64,000 bases of DNA, taken from NCBI GenBank assembly GCA_965637545.1, contig OZ281498.1, positions 13,578,001 through 13,642,000 on the forward strand, read 5' to 3'. This stretch comes from Phallusia mammillata. Lineage: Eukaryota. The notes beneath the pieces were generated by a model. The model did not search any database, was not told the DNA's origin, and was given only the letters and a program-made list of their open reading frames with translations. The translations under genes were made by a program, and so were the position numbers. Numbering within the stretch: the stretch's first letter is position 1; each line of letters begins with the position of its first letter. This document shows positions 1-36,549 of the stretch, in pieces.

Positions 1-307
1 GCTGTTAGGTTCAAAAATAAACTTATTTCGTGATGCAAATTATATCGAGAAAAATTCAATTCGATCATGTTAATACGCTCGGTAACCTGCAATTTCCTTC
101 CGCTTATCTTTCAACCGAAATAATCTTCAACTTATAACGGATAATCCGTTTTGATTACCAATATCCTCGACACTTTTTTCCGCTTTTACTCGTATATATA
201 CTGGGTCTGTCATGCAGTACTTCACTCACAACATTTGTTGTATCATCGATCGATTGTCTTCTGATTACTTTGCTTTGTATTTCGTTATACCAGCACCACT
301 GTGAAGA

Positions 308-3300
308 ATGGAATTCTCTACATGTGACAACCTTCAACAATGCGATGTTCCTTGCATTGAAAGTTTGTTTGCTAACGATCCCCAACTGCGAAGTTACGAA
401 AAGGATATTCGACTGAGGTTGGTACGACCTAAATAGTATTTGAATATATTGCTTTGTACCTATTTGAAAGGATATATCTGTATGAATAATGACGGTTTTA
501 TTTGGTCCACAAGGTAAATTAATAAGTGAGCTATTTGCGTCACCTATCGGTAAAAAGCAAATTCATGGCTTAGTTGAGTTGTGATATTAGCAGCCCCAAC
601 ATACATTAATAAATACGCTCGTTACAAACTGCTGTGTTTACTTGATATTGATGTCCAATTAAAGGTATGGTTTGTTCGAAAAAACTTTGATGGCAATTGA
701 ACGCGAGGAAGGGTTTGATCGATTCAGTCGCAGTTACGAAAATTACGGTGTTGTACTTACCCATGATGGAGGGGTGAAGTGCAGGGAATGGATTCCAAAT
801 GCACGGGCTGTCTACCTCAAGGGGGATTTTAGTGAGTTTTATGTACAGCTGGTTACTTTAGCTGAAACACAAACGTTGTAATTCACTCCATGATATATTC
901 AGGTAATTGGGAGAGAGTGAATTACAAAGAAGTTGGATACGGACAATGGGAGATTTACATTCCACCAAATCACGATGGAAGTTGTCCAATCCCACATCTT
1001 TCCGAGCTTAAAGTAATATTACTGCTGATAATCGTTTAATGGCATATGTTGTATTTTTGTACATTCGTTTCACTTTTAAAGTAGACCAAACACATAACAA
1101 ATATTTTGCATTTTTATTTACGTTTAGATTGAGATCGAAACAAGAGACAACCAAGTGTTGGAGAGAATTTCTCCTTGGGCAAATTACGTCACACAATGGG
1201 AATCTTCATTTAAGTGGCTTTTCTGGAATCCACAATCGAACGAGATTTGCAAACGAGTAAGTTAGATGGTTTCAAATAGTTTGGTTTGGTCCCAATTGAT
1301 ACACAACGATCATAACATTGTGATACGAAAATGATTTCGTTCGCAGTTTGTCGCAAATCGACTTCCCAAACCAGATCGTCTGCGTATCTATGAAGCTCAC
1401 ATCGGGATCAGCTCCGATCGATGTCAAGTTTCTTCTTTTCGCCATTTTACGTCTGAGGTTCTTCCACGAATCAGAGACTTAGGATACAACTGCGTCCTAT
1501 TGATGGCAATTATGGAACATCCTTGTTACTCAAGCGTTGGTTGCCAAGTTACCAATTTCTTTGCTCCATCCAGGTGATTATATCTTCCATTGCAATAAAC
1601 AAAAAAAGATAAACAACAAGTTATGGCCATTTTTTGTGTTTGCAGTCGGTACGGGACACCAGAAGACCTCAGAGAGTTGATCAGCGTTGCGCATGAAATG
1701 GGCATTTACGTCATGATGGACGTCATGCACAGTGAAGCATCGAGAAATTCTTCGGAAGGTTTAAACCGATTCGATGGCACCGATGATTGCTTCTTTCGAT
1801 CTGATAGGAGTGATTGTCATGCTCATGCAAATGATACAAGAAAGTTTGATTTTACAAAGTATATCTTGTTTTGTTTTCATGTTTGACCCTCAACAGAAAA
1901 CTAGCAACATTTTTTTAATTTTTAGATGGGAAGTGCTTCGGTTTCTTCTTTCCAATTTACGTCATTATGTGGACAACTTTGATTTCGATGGCTTTCGCTT
2001 TAGAGATGTGACGTCGATGATCTACCACGATCAAAGTTCGGGTTGGTATTAAAGCATCTGCCACATCAGAAACATATAATATAATTTATTTCTAACTTTT
2101 ATAGATCGTCGATATGCCTCCGGCTACAAACAATATTTCGGAATGCACATGGACATTGAGGCGATGGCTTATTTGATGCTTGCCAATAAGATGCTGCATC
2201 AGTTCTATCCACAAATCATCACAATAGCCGAGGTCAGTTAACTTCGTGAGGACCATACTTGAAGAATGCTGAAATAGAACAAATCAATTAATAACATTAT
2301 AATATCATACATAGGAACATTCTGAATATCCTGGTTTGACACATTTGGTGCGTGAGGGTGGTTTTGGTTTCGACTACAGACTATCAATGCACATTCCAAG
2401 CAAATGGATGCAGGTGATTCATGAATCAATGTTGGGCTGATATTTTGATTTGGCTTTGTGCGAAGTTTTTTGTTTGTGATTAGTTGCTAAACGAGCGTAG
2501 AGACGAAGATTGGAATATGAACGATATTTGTGAAATGTTTTTGGAATGTCGAAGAGGAGAAAAATACATCACTTTTTCGGAAAATTATGAGCAGGTAAGT
2601 TTTGTTATCTTTTATTTAATCGTGTTTGTATTTGACAAGCATTTTTTGTTGCAGAACACTGATGACCAGTGGACAATAGCAAGACAACTGATGGGTGACG
2701 AATGTATGTTGGATGGACAAGAAATGTCTCTGAAGTTGGATAGAGGAATAAGTCTTTATAAAATGGTCAGATTGTTCACCAGTGCTTTCAGTGGACAAGC
2801 TTTTCTAAACTTTATGGGTAAGAAGTCAAACAGTAAAAGTTTTGCATACGATGAAAATTTAATGCATTGATATTTTGCAAGCAGGTAATGAATTTGGTCA
2901 TCCTGATTGGGTGGAGTTTCCATCAGTGCAAAATTTTGACAACTATCATTTGGCCCGACGACAATTTCAGCTGGCCGACAACCCACAACTGAGATACAAA
3001 TTTCTCAATAACTTCGATATGGAAATGAATCGGTTGGAAGAACGGTTCGCGTGGCTCAACTCATCACCAGTATGTGTTTTACCGATAATGCTTTCCAAGA
3101 TCTTGGAAAAAACAGTTATTTGATGAAATAAAATAAAAACTGTCTCAAGAGGGAAACGACTTTAATCAGTGTAATATGTAGCGGATGAATTTAGCGTTTA
3201 GACAAACAAAATTATTACATGTGTTTTGATAACAAATATTTTTTCTTTTGTTTAAAGGCTTTTCTTACTCGCCAACATAATGATGACAAAGTAATCATCT

Positions 3301-4145
3301 TCGAACGTGCTGGTCTTCTTTTCATGTTCAACTTTCATCCAACAAGAAGCTATCCCGATTATCGAATCGGTGTGCGAACGCCAGGGAAGTAAGTAGAGTC
3401 CTAGAATGGTAGTGAAAATATAACTATTGTTGTTTGCATTTTTTAAAATTCATTAAAGGTACAACATCGTGCTGGACAGTGACGACAAAATGTTTGGAGG
3501 TCATGGAAGGAATCAAGCTTCAACTGATTTTTGTACCCAACAACAAGCTTGTGACAACATGAAATGCTCTCTGATGGTAAATTATAAGTTATATTATGAA
3601 TTAAATTAGAAAAGGCGTTATTTTATAAATTAGAAAGTGATTATTTGTTTAAACAACGCATTAATTGCATTTTGTTTTAGGTCTACTTGCCATCTCGATG
3701 TGTTGTCGTCATGGCAAACGAAACGATTTATTCCAAACAAAACTGGTTAAACGCCAACCGCGTTTATAACGAATATGGGAATTGTGGCGAGCGTGGTCGA
3801 AACTTTAATGATGCCAGACGTGGATCGGAATGGCATCGACACCGAAGTCACAGTCGAGGTCGTCAAGGTTTTCGACAAACTTCTCCTGGATTTGAAGCAC
3901 GTTTTAGTGGAATGTGTGTCACTGAACCGAGTTACCGAAGAGAAACAAGTCCTTATAAAGGCAGAAGTATCAACCGAAGTCAAAATCGTAGTGATTACCG
4001 TGATGGTCCGGATTACAACAGTCGTATGTATCGTGATGAAAATATGGGCAAGGAGATGAAAAGTGATTTTGGACGCAGCAGCCGAAGTCCTGTTCGAAGC
4101 AGATCTATTGGCTTTGAAAAATCAGTCAGCCCGACCCGGTATTAG
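308..4145 (+). CDS. GBE1: Glycogen branching enzyme (GH13_8, CBM48)-like protein, copy 1; 15 exons, 823 aa; active-site residues substituted; RS-rich C-terminal extension
   Basis: Exons 308-417, 665-831, 903-1012, 1128-1256, 1347-1573, 1646-1858, 1926-2041, 2105-2232, 2315-2413, 2484-2594, 2655-2817, 2885-3069, 3258-3388, 3459-3576, 3681-4145. All introns are GT-AG with consistent phases (2472 nt, no internal stop). GBE1 motifs are colinear: [128 protein letters not shown]. It is a divergent paralogue rather than a clear orthologue. Confidence 0.93.
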
Positions 4146-5200
4146 ATAATGTTGTTGTGAATTTATGTGGTTCGTTGTTTGTTAAATATGTTATGTGCCG
4201 AATGTATTTACATACAACATTTTTAGCTGTCATGTATTATTTTAGCAGGTGTTGTAAATATATTCCAATGTGAATAAAATATATGTATTTGAAACATACA
4301 TCGTGTGTGATAAGTAGCCAGAAACAGAACTTGCAAATTAGTTGTAATTGTAAACACCATGATATTTTAAAACGTAATCACGATTGTTAATAGTTTTGAA
4401 CATGGTATGTTCAAAAAATTGAGCAAATATGGTAAGCTTATAACGACCCGTGAACGCTCACTGGTTATAAGTCCGGAACGTCACAAGAGAGGGGATTGAA
4501 ACGCGCTTCCTAAAGACCTCCAACAAACTGTCCACGCAGAAATGTGTTTTGTAGATTTTGTTGAGTGAACACATCAATTGCGGTGGGAAAGGAGACGGTT
4601 TCTACGCAAAGGCATTGCGTTACTTATTCTGCTTTATATGAAGAAATACAACACAAATCTTACCAACTGTTGAGGTAACCGGAAAAAATAAACAACACGC
4701 AGTAATTACTGTCACACACCCCAACATTCAATGAAGTATAAGACCACAATGCGACGTCAAGCACAGTCCAGCTATTTTAGGCGACAGTTCTAGAGTAGAA
4801 TTAAGTCACGACAAACACATATTTGCAAATCGACTCATTAATAAAAAATACCTTTTACAGTTTACACGGTAAAAACACGACTTTCCAATACAACATCGTG
4901 CTGCACGAAAGTCAGTGACGAAAAAACTTATCCAAGTTGCGTTATCACACAAAACTGGCAGTTAGTTGTACGTCACACAACTCAATAGATTACAACACAA
5001 GTTGTTGTGAGAGAGAGCGAGAATCAATAGAATCAGCAATTACTGGCAAACAAAGTGTAACACATGGAAAACAGCAGTTTAATCATTATTATTTCAAACC
5101 TTATTTTTCGTGTTGGGAAAACTGGTGTTTGATGTGCAAACAAGATAAAATAACATTTTGCACATTTGGATTCTTCTCACCAAACAAATGTTTTAACACC

Positions 5201-6646: not shown

Positions 6647-7377
6647 CGTTAAAACATAAGCAAGACAAAACATTCACAAAAATAATGAACAATATTCTAC
6701 TTTAATGGTGCTTGTTAAGTGTTAGAAACTGATTGAAAAAACAGTGAGATGATTCCATTCGGGTAAAAGATGAAATTATGTCTCGGTTTGAAGCAATTAC
6801 GTTAGTTAGATTATCTGATATCAAATTGGGGTCATTTGGTATTTCGCGATTAAGCCTAAGTATATTGCTCATTACAATACATTACATTCTAACCATAACG
6901 ATCAACACACTTTGGCGAGCAATAAAAGTATTATAACAATCAAATCAAATAATCTCGTTATCCCTTTTGCATAGGAAAAAATATTCAAAATTGTTCGACT
7001 TAACGATCAACCAAAAATAAATTATTATTTAAGAAAGGAAAACACATCTCCCAATATTTAATTTTAAGCTTAATTTTTTTAACATTGAAACTTTGTAAAT
7101 GAATCGCACAAAGCCAAATCAATATATCAGCCTATCATGTTAATACGCTCGGTAACCTGCAATTTCCTTCCGCTTATCTTTCAACCGAAATAATCTTATA
7201 CTTATAACGGATAATCCGTTTTGATTACCAATATCCTCGACACTTTTTTCCGCTTTTACTCGTATATATACTGGGTCTGTCATGCAGTACTTCACTCACA
7301 ACATTTGTTGTATCATCGATCGATTGTCTTCTGATTACTTTGCTTTGTATTTCGTTATACCAGCACTACTGTGAAGA

Positions 7378-10300
7378 ATGGATTTCTCTACATGTGACAA
7401 CCTTCAACAATGCGATGTTCCTTGCATTGAAAGTTTGTTTGCTAACGATCCCCAACTGCGAAGTTACGAAAAGGATATTCGACTTAGGTTGGTACGGCCT
7501 AAATGGTATTTGAATATATTGCTTTGTACCTATTTGAAAGGATATTTCTGTATAAATAATGACGGTTTTATTTGGTCCACAAGGAAAATTAATAAGTGAG
7601 CTATTTGCGTCACCTATCGGTAAAAAGCAAATTCATGGCTGAGTTGAGTTGTGATATTAGCAGCTCCAACATACATTAATAAATACACTCGTTACAAACT
7701 GTGTTTACTTGATATTGATGTCCAATTAATTAAAGGTATGGTTTGTTCGAAAAAACTTTGATGGCAATTGAACGCGAGGAAGGGTTTGATCGATTCAGTC
7801 GCAGTTACGAAAATTACGGTGTTGTACTTACCCATGATGGAGGAGTGAAGTGCAGGGAATGGATTCCAAATGCACGGACTGTCTACCTCAAGGGGGATTT
7901 TAGTGAGTTTTATGTACAGCTTGTTAGTACAGCTGAAACACAAACGTTGTAATTCACTCAATGATATATTCAGGCAATTGGGAGAGAGTGAATTACAAAG
8001 AAGTTGGATACGGACAATGGGAGATTTACATTCCACCAAATCACGATGGAAGTTGTCCAATCCCACATCTTTCCGAGCTTAAAGTAATATTACTGCTGAT
8101 AATCGTTTAATGACATATGTTGTATTATTGTACAATCGTTTCACTTTTAAAGTGTACCAAACATATAACAAGTATTTGCAAAGATATTTATTTTTATTTA
8201 GATTGAGATCGAGACAAGAGACAACCAAGTGTTGGAGAGAATTTCTCCTTGGGCAAATTACGTCACACAATGGGAATCGTCATTTAAGTGGCTTTTCTGG
8301 AATCCAAAATCGAACGAGATTTCCAAACGAGTAAGTTAGATGGTTTCAAATAGTTTGGTTTGGACCCAATTGCTATACAACGATCATAACATTATAATAG
8401 GAAAATGATTTCTTTCGCAGTTTGTCGCAAATCGACTTCCCAAACCAGATCGTCTGCGTATTTATGAAGCTCACATCGGGATCAGCTCCGATCGATGTCA
8501 GGTTTCTTCTTTTCGCCATTTTACGTCTGAGGTTCTTCCACGAATCAGAGGCTTAGGATACAACTGTGTCCTATTGATGGCAATTATGGAACATCCTTGT
8601 TACTCAAGCGTTGATTGCCAAGTTACCAATTTCTTTGCTCCATCCAGGTGATTATATCTTCCCTTGCAATAAACAAAAAAGAGACAAAGATCAAGTTATG
8701 GCCATTTTTTGTGTTTGCAGTCGGTACGGGACACCAGAAGACCTCAGAGAGTTGATCAGCGTTGCGCATGAAATGGGCATTTACGTCATGATGGACGTCA
8801 TGCACAGTGAAGCATCGAGAAATTCTTCGGAAGGTTTAAACCGATTCGATGGCACCGATGATTGCTTCTTTCGATCTGATAGACGTGATCGTCATGCAAC
8901 TGATACAAGAAAGTTTGATTTTACAAAGTATATCTTGTTTTGTTTTCATGTTTGACTCCTAACTGAAAATTAGCAACATTTTTTAAATTTTTAGATGGGA
9001 AGTGCTTCGGTTTCTTCTTTCCAATTTACGTCATTATGTGGACAACTTTGATTTCGATGGTTTTCGCTTTAGAGATGTGACGTCGATGATCTACCACGAT
9101 CAAAGTTCGGGTTGGTATTAAAGCAATCTGCCACATTAGAAACTTATATAATTTATTCCTAACTTTATAGATCGTCGATATGCCTCCGACTACCAACAAT
9201 ATTTCGGAATGCACATGGACATTGAAGCGATAGCTTATTTGATGCTTGCCAATAAGATGCTGCATCAGTTCTATCCACAAATCATCACAATAGCCGAGGT
9301 CAGTTAACAACAATTATTTATAAAACTCGTAAGGACCATACTTGAAGAATGTTGAAATAAAACAAATCAATTAATAACATTATAATATCATACATAGGAA
9401 CATTCTGAATATCCTGGTTTGACACATTTGGTGCGTGAGGGTGGTTTTGGTTTCGACTACAGACTATCAATGCACATTCCAAGCAAATGGATGCAGGTGA
9501 TTCATGAATCGATGTTAGGCCGATATATTGATTTGGCTTTGTGTGAAGTTTATTGTTTGTGATTAGTTGCTAAACGAGCGTAGAGATGAAGATTGGAATA
9601 TGAACGATATTTGTGAAATGTTTTTGGAATGTCGAAGAGGAGAAAAATACATCACCTTTCCGGAAAATTATGAGCAGGTAAGTTTTGTTATCTTTTATTT
9701 AATCGTGTTTGTATTTAACAAGCATTTTTTGTTGTAGAACACTGATGACCAGTGGACGATAGCAAGACAACTGATGGGTGACGAATGTATGTTGGATGGA
9801 CAAGAAATGTCTCTGAAGTTGGATAGAGGAATAAGTCTTTATAAAATGATCAGATTGTTTACCAGTGCTTTCAGTGGACAAGCTTTTCTAAACTTTATGG
9901 GTAAGAAGTCAAACAGTAAAGTTTTGCATATGGTAAAAATTTAATACATTGATATTTTGCAAGCAGGTAATGAATTTGGTCAACCTGATTGGGTGGAGTT
10001 TCCATCAGTGCAAAACTTTGACAACTATCATTTGGCCAGACGACAATTTCAGCTGGCCGACAACCCACAACTGAGATACAAATTTCTCAATAACTTCGAT
10101 ATGGAAATGAATCGGTTGGAAGAACGGTTCGCGTGGCTCAACTCATCACCAGTACGTGTTTTACCGACAATGCTTTCCAAGATCTTAAAAAAACAGTTAT
10201 TTGATGAAATGAAATAAAAACTGTCACAGAAGGGAAACGACTTTAATCAGTGTAATATGTAGCGAGGATGGATTTAGAGTTTAGACAAACAAAATTATTA

Positions 10301-11281
10301 CATGTGTTTTGATAACAAATATTTTTTCTTTTGTTTCAAGGCTTTTCTTACTCGCCAACATAATGATGACAAAGTAATCATCTTCGAACGTGCTGGTCTT
10401 CTTTTCATGTTCAACTTTCATCCAACAAGAAGCTATCCCGACTATCGAATCGGTGTGCGAACGCCAGGGAAGTAAGTAGAGTCCTAGAATGGTAGTGAAA
10501 ATATAACTATTGTTGTTTACATTTTTCAAAATTCATTAAAGGTACAACATCGTGCTGGACAGTGACGACAAAATGTTTGGAGGTCATGGAAGGAATCAAG
10601 CTTCAACTGATTTTTATACCCAACAACAAGCTTGTGACAACATGAAATGTTCTCTGATGGTAAGAGTTTCAGTATGGAAGGTTTTCTTTATTTTTTAGCG
10701 GCATAAGTTCAAATTATTTATAAATTATATCATAAATTAAATTAGAAAAGGCATTATTTTATGAATTAAAAAGGGATTAAGTTTTCAAACAACGCATTAA
10801 TTGCATTTTGTTTTAGGTCTACTTACCATCACGAAGTGTTGTCGTCATGGCAAACGAAACGATTTATTCCAAACAAAACTGGATAAACGCCAACCGCGTT
10901 TATAACGAGTATGGGAATTGTGGCGAGCGTGGTCGAAACTTTAATGATGCCAGACGTGGATCGGAATGGCATCGACACCGAAGTCACAGTCGAGGTCGTC
11001 AAGGTTTTCGACAAACTTCTCCTGGATTTGAAACACGTTTTAGTGGAATGTGTGTCACTGAACCGAGTTACCAAAGAGAAACAAGTCCTTATAAAGGCAG
11101 AAGTTTCAATCGAAGTCAAAATCGTATTGATTACCGTGATGGTCCGGATTACAACAGTCGTATGTATCGTGGTGAAAATATGGGCAAGGAGATGAAAAGT
11201 GATTTTGGACGCAGCAGCCGAAGTCCTGTTCGAAGCAGATCTATTGGCTTTAAAAAATCACATAGCCCGACCCGATATTAG
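7378..11281 (+). CDS. GBE1: Glycogen branching enzyme-like protein, copy 2; same 15-exon structure, about 821 aa
   Basis: Exon-by-exon match to copy 1 at an offset of about 7070 nt. ATG at 7378 (MDFSTCDN), stop TAG at 11279-11281. All splice sites are retained. The only coding indel seen is an in-frame 6-nt deletion in exon 6 ([11 protein letters not shown] vs [13 protein letters not shown]). Same RFRDVT and ENYEQ substitutions as copy 1. Confidence 0.92.
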
Positions 11282-13040
11282 ATGTTGTATTGTTGTAATA
11301 ATTGTTGTCTGTTGTTGCTTGTTTGATGTTATTTGTGTTGGTATGTTTAAGTAAAGTATCATTTCCTTGCAAACAATGTATTCCTATTGTCTTTGAAATT
11401 TATTTCTAATGTAAACAAACATATGTGTTTGGTGGTTGTAACAGTAATGTCGAATGTAAATACAAAAATTGAACTAAATCTCTAGTGTACTTATTTGCTC
11501 TGAAAAGAAAAGTATAGGTGTGTGTTCTTATCTTTCACACTCTTTGGGCATGGTGAAGACCTGCAGTCATGAGTAGTTATACAGTTATAACCTTTGATAA
11601 AAGGTATAAAGCATTACAACCCAAAATCGAAGCCTCGTCTAACCGTCACTACCACAACACGGGACTACCACGACAAACAATTTGGTGATTTACCAATGTT
11701 ATTAATTCGTTTGCTACATGTCCAAACAATTACACGTATGGTTGGTTCAACGTTAAATTAAAGTTTTTATTTGCATATTGCAACGGAAAGCTGGAGTCAA
11801 TTGCTAGGATCCAACATGCAAAAAAGGACAAAAAGGATCATGCAGGAATTCACGCCTTGTCAGTGGCGGTATTAAAAATCGTCTCTGCGCTGAGCAGTTT
11901 GATTTGTGAAAACAGAGTAAATACAACTATGAGGTTTTGTCCTGAGCAGTCATCTGAAACTCGAGTTAATTAGTAACAAGCCAGTTCTTAACACTAGAAA
12001 GTGGGGTTCGACTTCGTCAAGACTTTTTTGCAAGGGTCAACGCAGTTTAACCAAAACAAACAATCAGGAATTCAGACAAAAGGAAATATTCTATACTCGT
12101 TTGTTGAAAAAAATAATCTTTTTCGTTACTTTGAATTCTCATGCTCGCGATGTGAGAAAACCCAAATATTACCAAAACAATAACAATACGCCGGACCAAA
12201 TAGAGGCGTCATATCGAATTAAGCTAAACACACTGAATGTGAGAAAACGCAAACACTACCAAGGTTTAATTGAAATAAAACGTAATAGTCACACTGCCAC
12301 AGCATTTGGAACAGGATATAGGGACACGGCAAATTTTGTTAATCGTCCAACGTAAGCAATTGGGTAACATTTTTTGTACATTGATAATAAAATCCGAAGT
12401 TTGCAACCGGATTAGTCTCTGAGCCTGAAACTTAATCGATTTTTTCTGATAAGGGAGGTTGAAATCAACAAGTTGCTCAGGAGACGGGACAAAAAAAGTT
12501 TGAAAAACACTAATGTAGAAGTGTTATCAACTATACGTCACTTCACTTTGTGCTTAATGACATAAATTTCAGGGTGATTATTAAAGTGTTCCTTGCTGAT
12601 GGAATGTCATTTGCGTCACTGATTTGTATCTGCAAATCTTTATCAAATAACTTTTAGTTACAACGCCCACATCCTGAGGCAAATCGAACTTTGTACTGTG
12701 AATCGATGAATGAATTGAGTGACTGTGTATCCAGGAATATTTCGGAAATGGAGGTGACGAACCAACAAGAAAACGTGACCAGAAGAAGTTGAACAGGAAC
12801 AAAGTTTCTATTTTCACTACAGGCATTGAACGGCGCGTGTCGGGAAAGAGGCGTTGACTATTTGACAATAAGGTTACTGCAAACACACCTGCACTCATAT
12901 ATTAATGAAAAAGATTGAAAATCAGTATCGCACTTTATTAACGTGATTGACGCATGAACACGTTTGCTATTAAGGACATCAACACAAGGTTGCACATTTG
13001 CAGTTGTATCACAGACGACTTAGGAAAGGGATTTGCGAAT

Positions 13041-28100: not shown

Positions 28101-31100
28101 ACAAAAACATAACACCAACGTTCTGAGTTGCCTGCAATAGTATAACAATGCTAAACCGGTCTTTGGTAATTTATCTAAGCAGCCGTTTCGACAACTTTAC
28201 GAGTTAAAACTTGATCTGCTTGTAACCGTAAGAATAGGAAATGTAAAATAGAATAGGTACTACTGTGTTGCAAGTGAATTAAACAGTTGAATGACTTGAA
28301 AAAAAAAACACTTTTGAACTTTATAATGATACTCTTCCGCAACAAAATTTTTATATAGTGTTATTTTTAGTAATCCTCAGAATTTTTTTGATGTTTGCCG
28401 GTGCAGTTTAAGTTTACAAAATATTTACTTGTTTACATTTTCTATGTGCAGAACATTGTCAGGTCTTGTGTATACATTTGCGGTTGCCGTTTTAACGCTT
28501 GCTTCAGCTTCAGTCTTTGTCGCAACACTTTCTGGCCAAGACCATCTCACTTCGGGCTTCGGTATGCCTGGATGGGTAAAATTCACGATTGAAATCAAAC
28601 AAAACTTATTAAGACGCCCCCTAGGGAGCAAATTAAGATACATATAGGATGGAGTTACATTAAAAAAGTTTTTTTGCATTAAATTATTTTCTTAAGGTTT
28701 GGTTAAATATGCCCAGGGAGAATGAATATCACACGCTTCCAACGTTTGACCTAAAATTTGGTATCTGAAGTGATATAGAATATAGTTTAAACATATAGTT
28801 TTGCACAGAGCAAAGATCTCTTAATGCAGGAAATCTAACACCACCACTATGCTGATGTTGACGATAACCCGACTTAAGTGAGACGTAGAAAACAGATACA
28901 GTGTAGAACTACCGCATACCTTCCGCCTCGCAAGTGATTTTTACTGAAGCCCCGAAGTCGACTGACAATCTTCGAACTGTTGGGTTGATAATAATTGGGG
29001 GTTCGGTGTGGATCAAGATTTTTGTCTGGTGGACGAAATTCCGGGACCGATTGTTAAACTGACAAGAAAATGTTCCGTTGTGCATCATACCAACTCTGAA
29101 ACGCACAAACACATCGAAATAACTTTTAGACCACCTTGTTTTAGTTGACGTTCTCATTTATTTGACTTAAACAGATATATTTTTTAGAGGAAACGTTTAT
29201 TGATTGCAATAAAGGCAAACACGTGTAAAAACAAATTAGTTTTAGGAACAGGGGAATGTTACAAAACCTATCTACTTTAATACCTTTAAGTATTGAAAAT
29301 GTATTTACGTAAACAGTGAAAACTTTGTACTTTGAAATGAAAAGACTTGAAGTGTCCCGTTTCACTGTTGCGATCGAAGCAATGTCGTCTTTAAAGATAC
29401 CGTCGTTTGTCACGTGATGTTCGAAAGACCACGTCACTACCCTTTCGCCGTCGCCGGAAAATGGACATTGGATTTCCAAGGAATCTCCATAGTTTACAGT
29501 CAACTCATCTGGATGGTATTGTACAGTCTCTTTGCGGCTTTAAAATTTTGCGTGTTTGACTGTTATGAATTAAAACGAAAGTAAACACTTACCTTTGATG
29601 CTCGATTTTGTTTTCGAAATCTTTGGTATATTTCTGTGTACCGTCTATCAAAATTTACAAATTTTGGTTTGTATTTGTGTGGCAATGTGACTCAATAGAC
29701 GAGGGTGTTTAAACAAAGTAAAAGAAGTTGGATTACGTACCCTTATTATTGCCGCTAGAAGTATTTTTTTCTTCAACTGCGTTGATCTTCCTGCATAGTT
29801 CGAGGACGTAAAACATAAAATAATTATGTTTAAAAACATTTTAGATATAACAAGAAGCAATTTACCCAATTCCTTTTACAGCTTTTATTTCTTCATAGAT
29901 ATTATGATTCGGTAGTTGAGGTTCTGGTGCTTCGCGAACGATTTTGCTGATGTTTTTGCTAGGAGCAACGATTGGTGGGCGGACGAAGTCGGGGGAGTAA
30001 TCCGAATCCAGCTCGTGTGAGAAAACGCCTTCCGTCCCAGAATCGTGATTGCTTGTGATGTTGCCGGAGTCACGTTCAATTTCGGTCTCCCCGTTTAAAG
30101 CCGACGCGCTTTGTTCAATTATCCCTGGCTTGATAAATATTTCATCAGCGCCATCATGCTGCCTCTCGCTCGGCATCTGAGGCGAACCTGCGCCCGACGC
30201 TTGAGAGCTAGAAAGTCCCGAAGCTTGTGTTGCGTTTTCCTCCCTGTCGGACCTTATCGAATTTAATTGCGTTTTTGGGCGGGATGTCGAGGGTCGTTCG
30301 GTTCCAAGAAATCCATCCAGCAATGGAATTTCACCGCTATGTGCTCCTTCAGCGGTGTTATATTCAGTCACGTTTTCCACGGATATGCTGGGAGAACTTC
30401 TGCTTGGTACTGTTATCGCAATGGGCATTTTTATTGACTGAGTGCTTTGATCCAACAAAATGTTATTTGATTGGTTTGTTTCGTTTGAAATTAAAAGAAC
30501 TTTCCCAATATCAAACATGTCTGTTGTAGATGTTACATTTATACGCGACCCCAGATTTGAATTTGAGGTTGGTTCTACATTTGAAACAACGCTGAAGGTC
30601 ATTTCACTAACCATGGTTAAGTTTGCCTTTTTAGCCGTTACCATACTCGTGGTTTCGTATGAAGCTGATGTAGGTTTGAGATTACGAACTTGTGGATGCA
30701 TAATAACTGATAGATCTGAAGAAGGAGCAGGATCGATTGTAGCGTGTTTGATGTCCGATATTTTGTCGGATATTTGAGCAGGTAACTCGATGGCTTTAGT
30801 AAAATTAGTATAGGTAGTGGGTAGGGAATAATCGACCACACTGGGTTTTATTGAAGCGTTTGCAGGTGCATTGCTGATCGACGGAAACATAGGTAGTGTT
30901 ACTGGCACCGATGGTGTCATCGTCGTGGTTTTGGTTTCTGTCATTTCTTCTGACGTCGTTGTGGGACTTGTTAAAACCAATTTATTAGTTTGTTCTTTTA
31001 AACCGATTGTTTTGATTTTTGAAACGTCGGGATGCTCTTCGTTTAATGGATTCTTCGTTTGATCGTTAGTTGTTGTGAGATCGATCGTTTCTGTTGTTGA

Positions 31101-34100
31101 TGCCGTAATTGTCGTGGAAATGTTTCTTACGGTTGCCATCGCAAAAATGGTAGTTTTGTGTGGTGAAGCTGTGACCATGTTTGAAATTCCAACAGTTACT
31201 GGCAATATCTGTGATGTCGATGGAAAAATATCACTTTCTGTAACTGACTTTAAAACTGTAGTGTTTGTATGTGTTGTTTTTAGATGTTTAGAAGTTGTTG
31301 TAGAAACTGGGGTTGTGGTAGTAGTGGCAGTTTTTATTGAAATCAATGTTGATGTAGATAGGGCGGAATTTACGGTTTCCGGTTGCTGAGTTGGTTCCAC
31401 CACTTTTGCTGTCGACGTGTCCATCACTTCGTCTGTTGTTGATTTTGGTAATAGAGCTCTTGAAGAAGCAGAAATTGTATTTTTAGTTGTTGGAGTTGTA
31501 AATATCGGTTGAGTCGATTTGCTGGCTGGGACAACATCGACCATATCTGGTGTCACCACAAAATCTAGTTGAAGATCGTCGAAAACGTAATAATCGTCGT
31601 CATCGTCTGAGCACAGAAAACATACGAAATTATAACTGTAAATATCTTGCACGAACGAACTTACCGATTGTATTTTCTTCAATCACTTGGTTTTCCATGG
31701 CATCAAGATAGATCGGTAAGGTTACGGCACCCATCCGGTTCGCTGCAATGCAACTGTGAAAAAGAACAAACAATAGTTTCGTTTCTATGAAAAATCAGAT
31801 GTCTTAAATGGGGCTTAATGCGCTTTTGACAGACCATGAAGTTTGCTCCAAATTGTATATTTGGCGAAAAAGTAGAATCTGAACAACTTTAACGAAATAA
31901 AAATTCAACCTGTACATTCCAATATGGTTTGTTTTAATCTCCCTGATCATAATTGAGTTGTTTTCAACAATTGTGTCGCCATTGGGGCTCGACGAATTGT
32001 TGATCAAGAGACGCTCCGTTGGTGTTTTCCATGCTATCGTGGCATCTGGCACCGCCTGTAACATGACAGTGATATTTACGCAACAAGCAACTTGAAAGCA
32101 ACCACAAATTCAATCAGCGACAACCATCTCCCCGAACTGAAGTCAGCCCACGTTCTAAATGACATTTACATGCATGAAAGGAGGTAGTGTAAGCGTTTGA
32201 AACGCCCAACGTGGCTTTCGAAATGCGTGACACTTTTGACTCTAAACATATTTTGCGGCTGAAAGTCAGGTTTTCCACCTGGTCTGGTTTGCTCTGCAAT
32301 GTTACCGAGCGACGTGTTTACATCATATGTATCCTAATGGTTTTCTAGAAGAGACCTTTACGTGCACTGAATACTTATGTCCTTTTACACAGGCCCTGAC
32401 ACCGTAATGGAATACAAAATGCAAAGTATACCGCAATTCTTTCAACCCGATGCTAAAATATTTAAAAACAGGTCAATGTATTTATGCACTTCGAAAAAAG
32501 TTAATAAAACTGACTTTAAAAATTTAAAGAATGATCGATTTGCCGCAATTGCACACTTGGTCCCAAATAATACTCAACCGAGTTTAATTGTACGGAAGAA
32601 AACTCCCTATGCCATCAACCTAAGAGTCTTGCAAATTCACTTACATTAACCACGCAGTCTGCTTTCCAGCTTTTCCCGATAACCGCACTGTCCTGGCGGG
32701 ATCGTTCGATCGAAGTGTCAGATGCTGGGACGACGAACAGTCTGACAGGGGCTATGTCCTCTGCCACTTCAGACTTTGTGGCCGATTGCGACATGCAATA
32801 ATAAACTCCGGCGTCATCCAACTTAGTTCTCCTAACAACTAAACGACCACCACCAGTTACACGAAACCGCCCAGTCCTCTGTCCCGCACGGATAACTCGT
32901 TCATTCGGCATCACCTTCGTCAATTAAAGCAAAACATTTACCTTAGGCTGCGAATTTGAAAGTACAATACGTATTGATACGTGTGGTATAATAATGAAAC
33001 GAGCGGTTCGTTTTCTACAAAACTTCTATAAGGATTTTAAGGCATCTGTGTTTCATACACTCCGAAGGCAGGTTGTTGCAGCAATATTGAATTATATGTC
33101 AAAACAAATGAGAGTGTTTAAAAATTGGTGACAAAATTACATCGCAACAAAGCCCAAACTAAGTTGTTTATTTGTTTCGTGGTTCATCGATAAGTTCACA
33201 ATTAAGTGCATGGTAGGTGGTCCTGTGGAATTTAGTAAAAAAACAAGAAGAACAAGCTTACCCAGGATAACGTGGGTCTTGGGGAGCCCATAGCTCGACA
33301 TCTCAACACAACCGTACGTCTTTCCATCGCTATTCGTGTTTCTTGTTGAGATGGATAAGGATCTATAAGCATCGTCCATGGATGACCTTTGGAGTTTTCG
33401 ATTTTGCTGGGTAAAATGTTGACCCGATTGCGAAACAAAAGAACAAGTTTTCTGTTCTGAAAACAAAGCGGTTTAATATAAAAAACAAGTTTTCTATTCC
33501 AATTCACTACTTTACATTTTTTTAACACAATATTTTTAGATATAAAATACTAAGAAACACATCAAAAACTGTAAGCCACCTCGGGACGAAACCTGTTTGA
33601 AGCAATGGTGATGGTGAAGGATGATGATTTAATAGTTTCCGAGGCTTCCAAGACCGAAGCAGCAATGATCCGGAGGCCGGAACCACGAGGATTTAATGCT
33701 GCCGTTGGATCACCTTGTATCTGTTTTTGCGATATAGACCATTACAGTTGCCAAATTTATTATAATTGGGGTCCCTAATCATTGCATGGTGTCAAATATT
33801 TAGATACAAAGGTTAAACCTTTTAGGTCTTTCACACAAACTTGAACTTTTTAAAGAAAAGTTATTTGACAAATGAATGACAGAGCGTAAAAACCGGAAAG
33901 CTGTCGATTAGTCGACCGCCTTACTTTGACTTTATAATCAGTGTGCTCTCCGAAGCTAGTGCTGCTTGGCGAACGAGAGGAAAAATTTAGTGCTGCGTTG
34001 AGATATGGCCGCAAAATGTCATCAAGACGAGTTGCATCGACAGGATAATCTATGGAACATGTCATCATCAGCTCAATCTCGGCAAGGTAGGTGAGGTTGG

Positions 34101-36549
34101 CGGTTGTCTCGATGTTGGTGTCCGTCTCAGGCTCGCGTGACGCGTTGCAATGCATCAGTAGCAGGGAGCTGATCGGGCTGTCTAACCGCATTGTCATGCT
34201 TTCCTTTGACCTGGCCCCGTGTCTGAAAAGCGTGGCCTCTGCACCGAAAATAAAAGTACATTTTCCAGCTGTGTAGACGCTGATTGAAGACTCAATTTGC
34301 TATGGGGATTGGGTTTCTCGTTGACGACGTACAACTAGCACGCTGTGGTTAATCGTGGGTGTTAACTTAAAAGTTCGTTTTTGGTATGGAGTCAAGCACT
34401 AAAAAATGGCCCTTTGTTTATTCATAAAAGAGATGAACGGATCAGTCAACATTTGCTGAAACCCAGTTGATAAAATCTAACCGGCGCAAAGTCAACCATA
34501 TCATGAAAAAAAATCATACGACTCAATCGCACATATTCCAACATATCAAGTCGAACACGAAGAGATAAAAGATGAATGACAGTTAGCTGCTACACCGAAT
34601 TCGGTTCCTAAAACAATAATGTTATAAATATCCAACCAGCATTTTTAATCTGTAAATATGCATGTGGGATTAGGTTCATAAGCGCTACTATAGTGGCACA
34701 TCACAACATTCTGTCATCATGTGTTAAAACTTGAAAGAATTTCACCTATCGCAAGGTTGGGTACAATGCTCTCACCATTTTGAAGTTCCATGTGTGAAGG
34801 GTCATCTGGGAACGTTTCAGTAACTGCCCCTTTTTGATGTTTGTCGCTTTTAGGAGGAGTGCAAGTGATATTGTCAAAAGGAACTTGCAAAATTTTTCTT
34901 CCTTGCAGATGAACAGGCGAAGCGCATATTGCACATTCAGGTTCAGTATCATGTCGAAAAATACTTCGTTTGCATCTGCAGCATAATTTTGTAGTTATAA
35001 TCATAGAAATCGGTTTTATGTTTGCTTGTTATTGCTTCTAGCAAATAATAGCGTTTTATCAGGGCATTGACTACAGATTACAAACATTGAAGGCAAAATC
35101 ATTGTTGTTATTTTTTCTGAAATATTGTCACTTGCACAACTTGTATGTTGATTCTGGTCAAATGGGCCTGGATTCTTCCTGAACACTTCTTTCTGTGCGT
35201 GCATGTTGCCAAGCAACACGTATTGAGAAATCGCAAACAGGTTTAACGGAAGGTTGCAAACTACAATGATTCACCATTGACCTTTAAAATTACCAAGTAT
35301 TGTTTGCCTTGAACGGACTCTGGTAATTTATTGCAATTCCCGATAGGGTTTAGTCATAAACACGGTTGTGGTGCAACCGAGGGCAGTGTCGATAATATTC
35401 TAGGCTTATATTCAGACCTAATTGAATTGTACAGGGATTGGTGGCACAACCGCAGCGATTCTTACCTATACTTGTTGCTCTCACGCATCCATTGATGTAA
35501 CCACTGCAGTTGGCACGAGCATTCCCATGGGTTTCCATGCAAATAAACTTGCTGCAAACTTGTTATGCCTGGCAGGAGCGCTTGCGGCAAAACCTCCAAA
35601 TCGTTGTGCGACAAATAAAGGTATTGGATGTGCGAGAAACTGTGCAACAAAACCAAAGGGTAAATGTAACGCAATAAAAACCAACACCTAACAATTAACA
35701 GTTTAACATCAGTTCAGTCACGTTTTGAACGTTGTTATAACAACGGTGCATACACCACGTTACGAAACAGGTGTAAACACTTAAACTTTGCAATTCTGAT
35801 ACTATATTTTTTGAGTTGTAAATGGGACGAAAATGACAGCCCGTCTAAGTCACAAACAAATGACAGATGTAGTCGACCTGATATTAAGGATAAGTCGGAT
35901 TTGGCACACACCTAAAATAGTTGTTAAAACGGACAGTGGCAAAGTTGTCTGCGTGAAGTTTAGACAACTTGTTCCCCTCCAATTGCACCAAGTTAAGATT
36001 GGTCAAGCCGATGAAGGCCTCCGGGTGGATAAAGGTTATTTTGTTGTGGTCGAGGTGTAAGCGTGACAGGGATGTCAGGTTGTCGAAAGATAACTTGAAA
36101 ACGCCGGAAATCTCGTTCCAACTTAGTCGAAGCACTTCGAGTTCCCTCAAAGAACCGAACTCACCACCGTGAATTGATCGGATTTCATTGCTTTGCAAAA
36201 ACAGAAAACGTAGAGTAGAACCTGCTTCAGCGAGCGCCGTCGTGGGAATGCGTTTGATCTTGTTGTAGGCCAGGTTGATTTTCACAACTTTCAGCGGCAA
36301 TTCTGCAGGGATTTCCGTCAGGAGACGAAACGTGCAGTGAATCTCGCGATTTCCGTAGCACTTACACCCATTTGCACAGCGTTCGTTGTTCAGGCGCTGT
36401 GAGCCGCTCGGTGGAAAAACTCTACCAACAGAACCAAGAGTTTGACGCCTGTGTCGTTTTTCCCAATGTTCGATGTTTCTTGTGTTAACGTAAGTGACGA
36501 AACATATACAGGCTAACAAAATCACTGCGGTGTTCAGTTTGTTTGACAT
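25174..36549 (-). CDS. IGSF10: IGSF10/MXRA5 (adlican)-like secreted protein: signal peptide, LRRNT, LRRs, LRRCT, 2 Ig domains, long Ser/Thr-rich stalk, several C-terminal Ig domains
   Basis: First exon from 36549: signal peptide, CANGCKCYGNREIHCTFRLLTEIP, LAYNKI, LQSNEI, LSWNEI, LDHNKITFIHPEAF, LEGNKL. LRRCT: LHGNPWECSCQL (35.5-35.6 kb). Ig exons: WTMLID...VVLRCRAMGSPRPTLSW (33.3 kb), DDAGVYYC (32.8 kb), AVPDATIAW (32.0 kb). S/T-rich exon 31606-~29860. Further Ig exons at 29.4, 29.0, 28.5, 28.0, 27.6, 27.5, 26.5, 26.2, 25.9 and 25.6 kb. Last exon ...DNGFYKCYARNMMGSAVKTLKLRVYH* with stop at 25174-25176. Junctions near 29.5-29.9 kb are unresolved. The sequence alone cannot separate IGSF10 from MXRA5. 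Confidence 0.85.

Follow-up and report, generated by a model that had tools for sequence, protein, structure and literature searches.

Branching enzymes of glycoside hydrolase family 13 (GH13) subfamily 8 (GH13_8), among them human GBE1 (PDB 4BZY and 5CLT) and rice BEI, combine a helical segment, a CBM48 domain, a (beta/alpha)8 barrel and a C-domain, in that order. In human GBE1, Asp357 is the nucleophile, Glu412 the proton donor, and Asp481 the transition-state stabiliser; seven residues of the -1 subsite are strictly conserved, and a non-catalytic cleft contacts acarbose/maltoheptaose through E63, W91, P93, Y119, G120, K121, W332, E333, and R336 (PMC4581599). In plants, polyglucan structure is influenced by ISA2 (ISOAMYLASE 2), a paralogue of ISA1 within GH13 that lacks catalysis and exerts its effect by binding glucan and forming complexes (PMC12510319). 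The present study concerns two GBE1-like genes in tandem, copy 1 and copy 2, in a 64,000-nucleotide stretch of ascidian DNA (Phallusia mammillata, contig OZ281498.1, positions 13,578,001 to 13,642,000; this whole stretch is called the window below). Their proteins have the domain order of the GH13_8 enzymes, and it is likely that they are pseudoenzymes, maintained by selection, catalytically dead, and predicted to bind glycogen. The loss of catalytic residues, the intactness of the genes, purifying selection, transcription, conservation across an ascidian clade, and retention of the glucan-binding cleft led us to this reading. An earlier, sequence-only reading of the window had predicted just such a dead but maintained glycogen-binding protein, and the intact open reading frames (ORFs), low ratio of non-synonymous to synonymous substitution rates (dN/dS), spliced transcripts, clade conservation, and retained cleft all fit that prediction.

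Residues are numbered as in human GBE1, a numbering that was checked on a primate GBE1 of 702 amino acids (aa), by its motifs at positions 251, 286, 291, 355, 357, 412, 480, and 481, and against the triad Asp357-Glu412-Asp481 stated in PMC4581599. The window proteins were aligned with 21 canonical animal glycogen branching enzymes (GBEs), and the eight sites were invariant in 21 of 21, indicating that the substitutions in the window are not ordinary family variation. For copy 1, the sequence-only reading had listed the replacements Y251C, H291E, D357R, H480Y, and D481E, with D286, R355, and E412 kept, and it was correct in every coordinate; the same changes in copy 2, with AGA as the codon for residue 357, were likewise confirmed (Table 1). 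A direct phmmer alignment of exon 7 with solved branching enzymes also placed the Arg on the nucleophile Asp. In both copies, the catalytic triad was replaced by Arg-Glu-Glu, and three of the seven -1 subsite residues (D286, R355, and E412) were retained. With the nucleophile, the stabiliser, both histidines of the -1 subsite, and the stacking Tyr replaced, the double-displacement reaction would be lost. Most likely, Arg357 together with acidic residue 358, Glu412, and Glu481 would plug what used to be the -1 subsite by salt bridges.

The same loss was found in other ascidians. A search with exon 5 covered 1.84 billion representatives, and two further searches and cluster look-ups completed the set. 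The best match of the exon 5 search was the type A protein of Ciona savignyi (H2Y7M0; region I DVMHGE, region II RFRE). The clade further comprised the type A protein of Ciona intestinalis (XP_002126483, region II RFCG), the type B protein of C. savignyi (H2YVI8, RFNG), the type B proteins of C. intestinalis (RFNG), whose several loci share one chromosome and more than 90% identity (e.g., XP_078494423/424/495023), and the products of three genes in Clavelina lepadiformis (714, 717, and 726 aa, RFNG). Every member of the clade has lost D357, to N, C, or R, and has E or Q in place of H291, while Glu412, Asp286, and Arg355 are kept in all. The orthologues carry the domains PF02922, PF00128, and PF02806, and the window protein is about 50% identical to vertebrate GBE1. 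The same protein or a close relative from the window species was found neither in the exon 5 search nor in a profile search with the window exons, where the nearest proteins were 53-57% identical. The top match of the profile search (P0270) was discarded, as it was an unrelated model in which two canonical copies had been fused.

Canonical proteins with a full set of catalytic residues were present beside the nucleophile-lacking copies in three of the three other ascidian species that have such copies, namely C. intestinalis (XP_002131559), C. savignyi (H2Z9R6), and Clavelina (a 686-aa protein); the Phallusia and Styela proteins in the alignment were also canonical. The separate canonical GBE1 that the sequence-only reading expected in the genome of the window thus has its counterpart in each of these three species. 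In C. intestinalis, the canonical, A-type, and B-type genes lie on contigs of 9.5, 5.4, and 7.0 Mb, respectively. At one Ciona locus (L001, 8918-9034, minus strand), the first 39 residues of the B-type protein recur as a perfect inverted copy about 1 kb upstream of the gene; as this copy has no further exons, exon 1 seems to have been duplicated in part.

The clade also bears on whether the window proteins could be remodelled enzymes that use another nucleophile, such as Asp358 or Glu481, for glycosyl transfer or hydrolysis, possibly on a new substrate. An Asp directly after the Arg in both copies, a Glu at that position in C. savignyi type A, the retention of Glu412, Asp286, and Arg355 throughout the clade, and purifying selection on the protein would all agree with such chemistry. 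However, the other clade members keep Gly358, and position 357 varies between N, C, and R; of the seven strictly conserved -1 subsite residues, four have been lost, along with about one third of the invariant barrel residues, and GH13 enzymes in which the nucleophile Asp is mutated to Asn are inactive, as is generally known for the family. The sequence-only reading had raised the possibility of a remodelled site relying on the adjacent Asp; this part was not borne out, as the orthologues read N-G, C-G, or R-E and conserve no replacement nucleophile. An acidic residue 358 occurs only in the two lineages with Arg357, the window (R-D) and C. savignyi type A (R-E), which are not sisters in the tree, and where residue 357 is Asn or Cys, residue 358 is Gly, as in active enzymes. 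Because the acidic residue appears only beside Arg357, the pattern suggests charge compensation for an Arg in an acidic pocket rather than a new nucleophile or a conserved catalytic replacement, and we regard a remodelled enzyme as very improbable.

The changes in the predicted pseudoenzymes extend beyond the eight core sites. Invariant columns were defined on the 21 canonical enzymes (205 columns), and domains were delimited by the secondary structure of an AlphaFold model. The window proteins keep 70-71% of these columns, and about one third of the invariant barrel positions are changed. In copy 1, 56 of 168 invariant columns were changed in the barrel versus 2 of 34 elsewhere (p = 7e-4), and the clade means were 27-37% for the catalytic barrel, 11% for the C-domain, and 8% for the N-terminal/CBM48 region. 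In exons 2-4 of copy 1, which cover the N-terminal helical segment and the CBM48 region that the sequence-only reading described as intact, 1 of 21 invariant columns was changed.

The non-catalytic cleft was retained. E63, W91, P93, Y119, G120, W332, E333, and R336 are identical in the window copies, and the cleft residues are kept throughout the nucleophile-lacking clade, except for K121, which is Q in the window copies. Counting N62, which varies among canonical enzymes too, 8 of 10 oligosaccharide-contacting residues are identical. The fold would be preserved as well. A full-length alignment of the Ciona orthologue to 4BZY gave E = 3e-224, and the AlphaFold model of the C. savignyi type A orthologue, which also has Arg357, reached a mean predicted local distance difference test score of 86 and a predicted template-modelling score of 0.90. 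Superposed on human GBE1 (4BZY and 5CLT), this model gave template-modelling (TM) scores of 0.89/0.94 and a root-mean-square deviation of 2.3 Å. The superposition proposed by the sequence-only reading thus returned the fold of human GBE1 (4BZY), with the Ciona orthologue serving as a proxy for the window protein. In the proposed role, the cleft between CBM48 and the catalytic domain would attach the protein to glycogen. There it could serve as an adaptor or scaffold, to which a disordered tail rich in Arg, Ser, Gly, and Tyr would contribute in several lineages; alternatively, it could compete with active enzymes and so tune their access.

Another explanation is that these proteins are non-catalytic partner subunits which, like ISA2, modulate an active GBE or another glycogen enzyme rather than bind glycogen themselves. 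A canonical GBE coexists in every species where both could be sought, the Clavelina cluster of nucleophile-lacking genes is separated from the canonical gene by about 35-45 kb, and ISA2, which lacks catalysis and binds its GH13 paralogue ISA1, sets a precedent (PMC12510319). On the other hand, the best-conserved surface that was mapped is the glucan-binding cleft and no known protein interface, and an interaction with an active GBE or another glycogen enzyme is hypothetical. A partner subunit is an unlikely explanation, with somewhat more to recommend it than a remodelled enzyme.

Selection on the two copies was estimated with the Nei-Gojobori method. Overall dN/dS between copy 1 and copy 2 was 0.27; over residues 1-683, the enzyme part, it was 0.21, with 18 non-synonymous and 21 synonymous differences (Fisher p = 2.4e-6), and in the C-terminal tail it was 0.58, not significantly below 1. 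The copies diverged by 2.1% in exons and 6.4% in introns. The youngest pair of Clavelina genes gave 0.26 over residues 1-680 (p = 1e-6). Neither window copy showed a disrupted ORF, intron loss, or a dN/dS near 1.

Transcription of both copies was observed. Contigs of four public runs were aligned on copy 1, and in three runs from three studies, the contigs skipped 14 of 14 introns, with junctions at the GT-AG sites predicted. In the fourth run, evidently genomic, the introns were present. Of 21 variant letters in the spliced contigs, 18 were copy 2 letters, including a 6-nt deletion, and the contig of one run was identical to copy 1 over exons 2, 5, and 6. As intron-skipping contigs carried the letters of each copy, both copies are transcribed and their transcripts correctly spliced; that these runs are RNA was concluded from the removal of the introns.

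These results speak against the view that the genes were recently inactivated and are becoming pseudogenes, their intact ORFs reflecting only the short time since inactivation. The nucleophile-lacking clade does evolve about 3-4 times faster than its canonical sister, and NCBI flags some of the Ciona copies as LOW QUALITY PROTEIN, as might be expected of genes in decay. However, the nucleophile had already been lost in the ancestor of Ciona, Clavelina, and the window lineage, and yet its descendants still have intact ORFs of 15 exons, two recent pairs that arose independently give dN/dS values of 0.21-0.26, and transcripts of both copies are correctly spliced. The sequence-only reading had named an unexpressed gene with dN/dS near 1, a decaying pseudogene, as what would overturn its proposal, and the spliced contigs and the dN/dS of 0.21 contradict that alternative. 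We consider pseudogenes extremely improbable, the least probable of the explanations weighed here.

Several points nevertheless count against a maintained, catalytically dead, glycogen-binding protein. Inactivity is argued from the general GH13 mechanism, and the kept Glu412, Asp286, and Arg355 allow some sugar binding or unorthodox chemistry in the old groove. The catalytic face of the barrel, as delimited with DSSP, was not significantly more changed than the rest (p = 0.7), and the retention of the eight core residues (3 of 8) differed only marginally from that of the other invariant residues (142 of 197; p = 0.05). The retained cleft residues indicate a potential for glycogen binding only, and the fold model is that of an orthologue, 53% identical to the window protein. 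The sequencing runs were guessed to be RNA, and their contigs carry no information on level, tissue, or strand.

Gene models were built by accepting exon chains only if they had GT-AG introns and an open frame. The exons of copy 2 were obtained by projecting those of copy 1 onto the repeat, and all of its introns were GT-AG. Both ORFs are uninterrupted, with all 14 introns GT-AG in each copy, upholding the 15 exons and intact splice sites of the sequence-only reading. The base composition of the window is about 37% GC, and the introns are short. In a self-comparison of the window, the duplicated unit at 64-4179 matched 7134-11316 at 94% DNA identity. The two proteins differ at 25 residues, and exon 6 of copy 2 has a 6-nt deletion relative to copy 1. 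Pfam searches on exon pieces returned CBM_48 (weakly, on the exon 2 piece), Alpha-amylase, and Alpha-amylase_C.

Table 1. Positions in the window of the two GBE1-like genes and of the features discussed in the text (residues in human GBE1 numbering).
Feature	Copy 1	Copy 2	Strand	Remarks
GBE1-like gene	308-4145	7378-11281	+	Copy 1: 15 exons, 823 aa, 14 of 14 introns confirmed by spliced contigs; copy 2: tandem duplicate, 15 exons, 821 aa
Exons 1-8	308-417, 665-831, 903-1012, 1128-1256, 1347-1573, 1646-1858, 1926-2041, 2105-2232	7378-7487 (exon 1)		
Exons 9-15	2315-2413, 2484-2594, 2655-2817, 2885-3069, 3258-3388, 3459-3576, 3681-4145	10817-11281 (exon 15)		
N-terminal helical segment and CBM48 (exons 2-4)	666-1256		+	Weak Pfam CBM_48 match; cleft residues E63, W91, P93, Y119, and G120 retained, K121 is Q
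Y251 to C (TGC)	1542-1544	8616-8618	+	-1 subsite Tyr replaced
D286 kept	1719-1721		+	Region I
H291 to E (GAA)	1734-1736	8809-8811	+	Region I reads DVMHSE
R355 kept	1996-1998		+	
D357 (nucleophile) to R (AGA)	2002-2004	9071-9073	+	Region II reads GFRFRDV
G358 to D (GAT)	2005-2007	9071-9076 (AGA-GAT)	+	Directly after Arg357
E412 (acid/base) kept (GAG)	2230-2232	9296-9298	+	TIAEE
H480 to Y (TAT)	2586-2588	9669-9674 (pair 480-481)	+	Region IV
D481 (stabiliser) to E (GAG)	2589-2591	9669-9674 (pair 480-481)	+	Region IV
Low-complexity C-terminal extension, about 140 aa, R/S/G/N/Y-rich	3717-4142	10853-11278	+	No Pfam match

A 35-nt stretch of intron 9 of copy 1 (2429-2463) recurs inverted, at 91% identity, at 7104-7138, precisely where the duplication unit of copy 2 has its upstream edge, and may represent a short repeat that marks the breakpoint of the duplication. 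In copy 1, intron 14 contains 2.2 repeats of a 24-nt unit (3601-3653), and the same intron is about 50 nt longer in copy 2. Elsewhere in the window, on the minus strand, an uninterrupted ORF of 606 aa (29862-31682) had no Pfam match, and an ORF of 221 aa (35887-36549) contained leucine-rich repeats (LRR_8, E = 1e-21).

In a maximum-likelihood tree of 29 proteins (LG+C20+F+G4), the eight nucleophile-lacking proteins, from no fewer than three ascidian genera, were monophyletic (100/100) and nested among the tunicate GBEs (100/98). Their sister group was formed by the canonical enzymes of Phallusia, Clavelina, and Ciona (94/88), and Styela's canonical enzyme fell outside. The tree suggests that the founding duplication post-dates the split of Styela (Stolidobranchia); a tree uniting all canonical tunicate enzymes was not rejected by the approximately unbiased test (p = 0.225), so the duplication took place no later than in the ancestor shared by the Ciona, Clavelina, and window lineages, and possibly earlier. 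Root-to-tip distances were about 0.9-1.0 in the nucleophile-lacking clade versus 0.2-0.33 in the canonical sister. Nine internal exon lengths (167, 227, 116, 128, 99, 111, 185, 131, and 118) are common to the window gene, a nucleophile-lacking Clavelina gene, and the canonical Clavelina gene, indicating that the founding duplication was genomic and did not occur by retroposition. A plausible course is that a whole intron-containing GBE gene was duplicated in an early ascidian and that one daughter lost its nucleophile, probably to Asn first. The remaining catalytic face would then have drifted, while CBM48, the C-domain, and the non-catalytic cleft would have stayed under the constraint seen in active enzymes.

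Later duplications were local. Clavelina has three intact nucleophile-lacking genes within 24 kb (L002, 5647-23638, OX392443.1), two of them head-to-head at 89% DNA identity, and its canonical gene (L003, 10001-15320, OX392443.1) is on the same chromosome, at the distance given above. The recent duplicates arose independently in Ciona, Clavelina, and the window species, and such repeated local duplication points either to recurrent birth-and-death or to an old array evolving in concert. The window begins 300 bp before copy 1; by analogy with Clavelina, where the canonical gene is near the cluster, its counterpart in the window species might be located a short way upstream, outside the window.

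The C-terminal tails were compared between the window proteins and five homologues (P0153, P0154, P0271, P0338, and P0334). Canonical GBEs end just after the C-domain, without an extension. Beyond the tail of the window proteins (Table 1), which is also rich in RS, SP, and RG dipeptides, tails of about 95 residues (rich in S, G, N, and Y) were found in Ciona type B, of 30-40 residues in Clavelina, and of about 20 residues in Ciona type A. The tails cannot be aligned between lineages; an aromatic residue is nonetheless present in the last three positions of every complete tail (TRY, QYW, VYW, AQW, IYC, and FWH) and may represent a short C-terminal docking motif. More tentatively, we propose that the clade could be a dedicated ascidian regulator or scaffold of the glycogen particle, non-catalytic and evolved from a branching enzyme, in which a docking module is joined to a disordered, phosphorylatable Arg/Ser/Gly/Tyr tail with an aromatic end. 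This proposal is possible, and clearly less probable than the pseudoenzyme reading itself. Such a protein would recruit partners to glycogen or, in particular cells, determine the density of branches by competing with the active GBE.

The literature searched contained no account of a dead GBE paralogue; the sole mentions came from gene lists for Ciona. A transcript named “branching enzyme-like (Gbe1)”, which may be canonical or nucleophile-lacking, is part of a Ciona photoreceptor/Onecut data set (PMC8012850). The Ciona probe Gbe1 (KH.C6.224), which may likewise represent either kind of paralogue, is reported to mark the larval sensory vesicle (PMC6457572). The present proteins also carry a warning for annotation, as pathway reconstructions would over-count branching enzymes in tunicates.

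Compared with the GH13_8 branching enzymes, the window proteins have recognisable regions I-IV, a retained non-catalytic glucan cleft, and the exon structure of the canonical ascidian GBE, but they are without Asp357, Asp481, His291, His480, and Tyr251, about one third of the invariant barrel positions differ, the C-terminus is extended by a long low-complexity tail, and evolution is faster. Folds that were kept while their catalytic residues were replaced, and that were reused for binding or scaffolding, are known from CD98hc/4F2hc, which has a GH13-like ectodomain, and from the GH18 chitinase-like lectins. These belong to unrelated lineages and have unrelated functions; 4F2hc is a chaperone of membrane proteins for which glucan binding is not known.

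The closest functional analogy is plant ISA2, likewise a conserved GH13 paralogue of an alpha-glucan enzyme that has lost catalysis. ISA2 differs in belonging to a debranching subfamily of GH13 and to plants, and a partner and a phenotype are established for ISA2 only. In plants, dead paralogues of starch enzymes contribute to the control of polyglucan architecture, whereas for animal glycogen metabolism no dead paralogue of a branching enzyme was found in the literature searched. The ascidian clade is a testable case, being conserved, transcribed, and repeatedly duplicated, with its catalytic machinery lost and its glucan-docking surface kept, and Ciona is a tractable chordate model in which to test it. 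If the proposed role as a regulator or scaffold of the glycogen particle were true, these proteins would be the first animal counterpart of the non-catalytic proteins of plant starch metabolism, such as ISA2.

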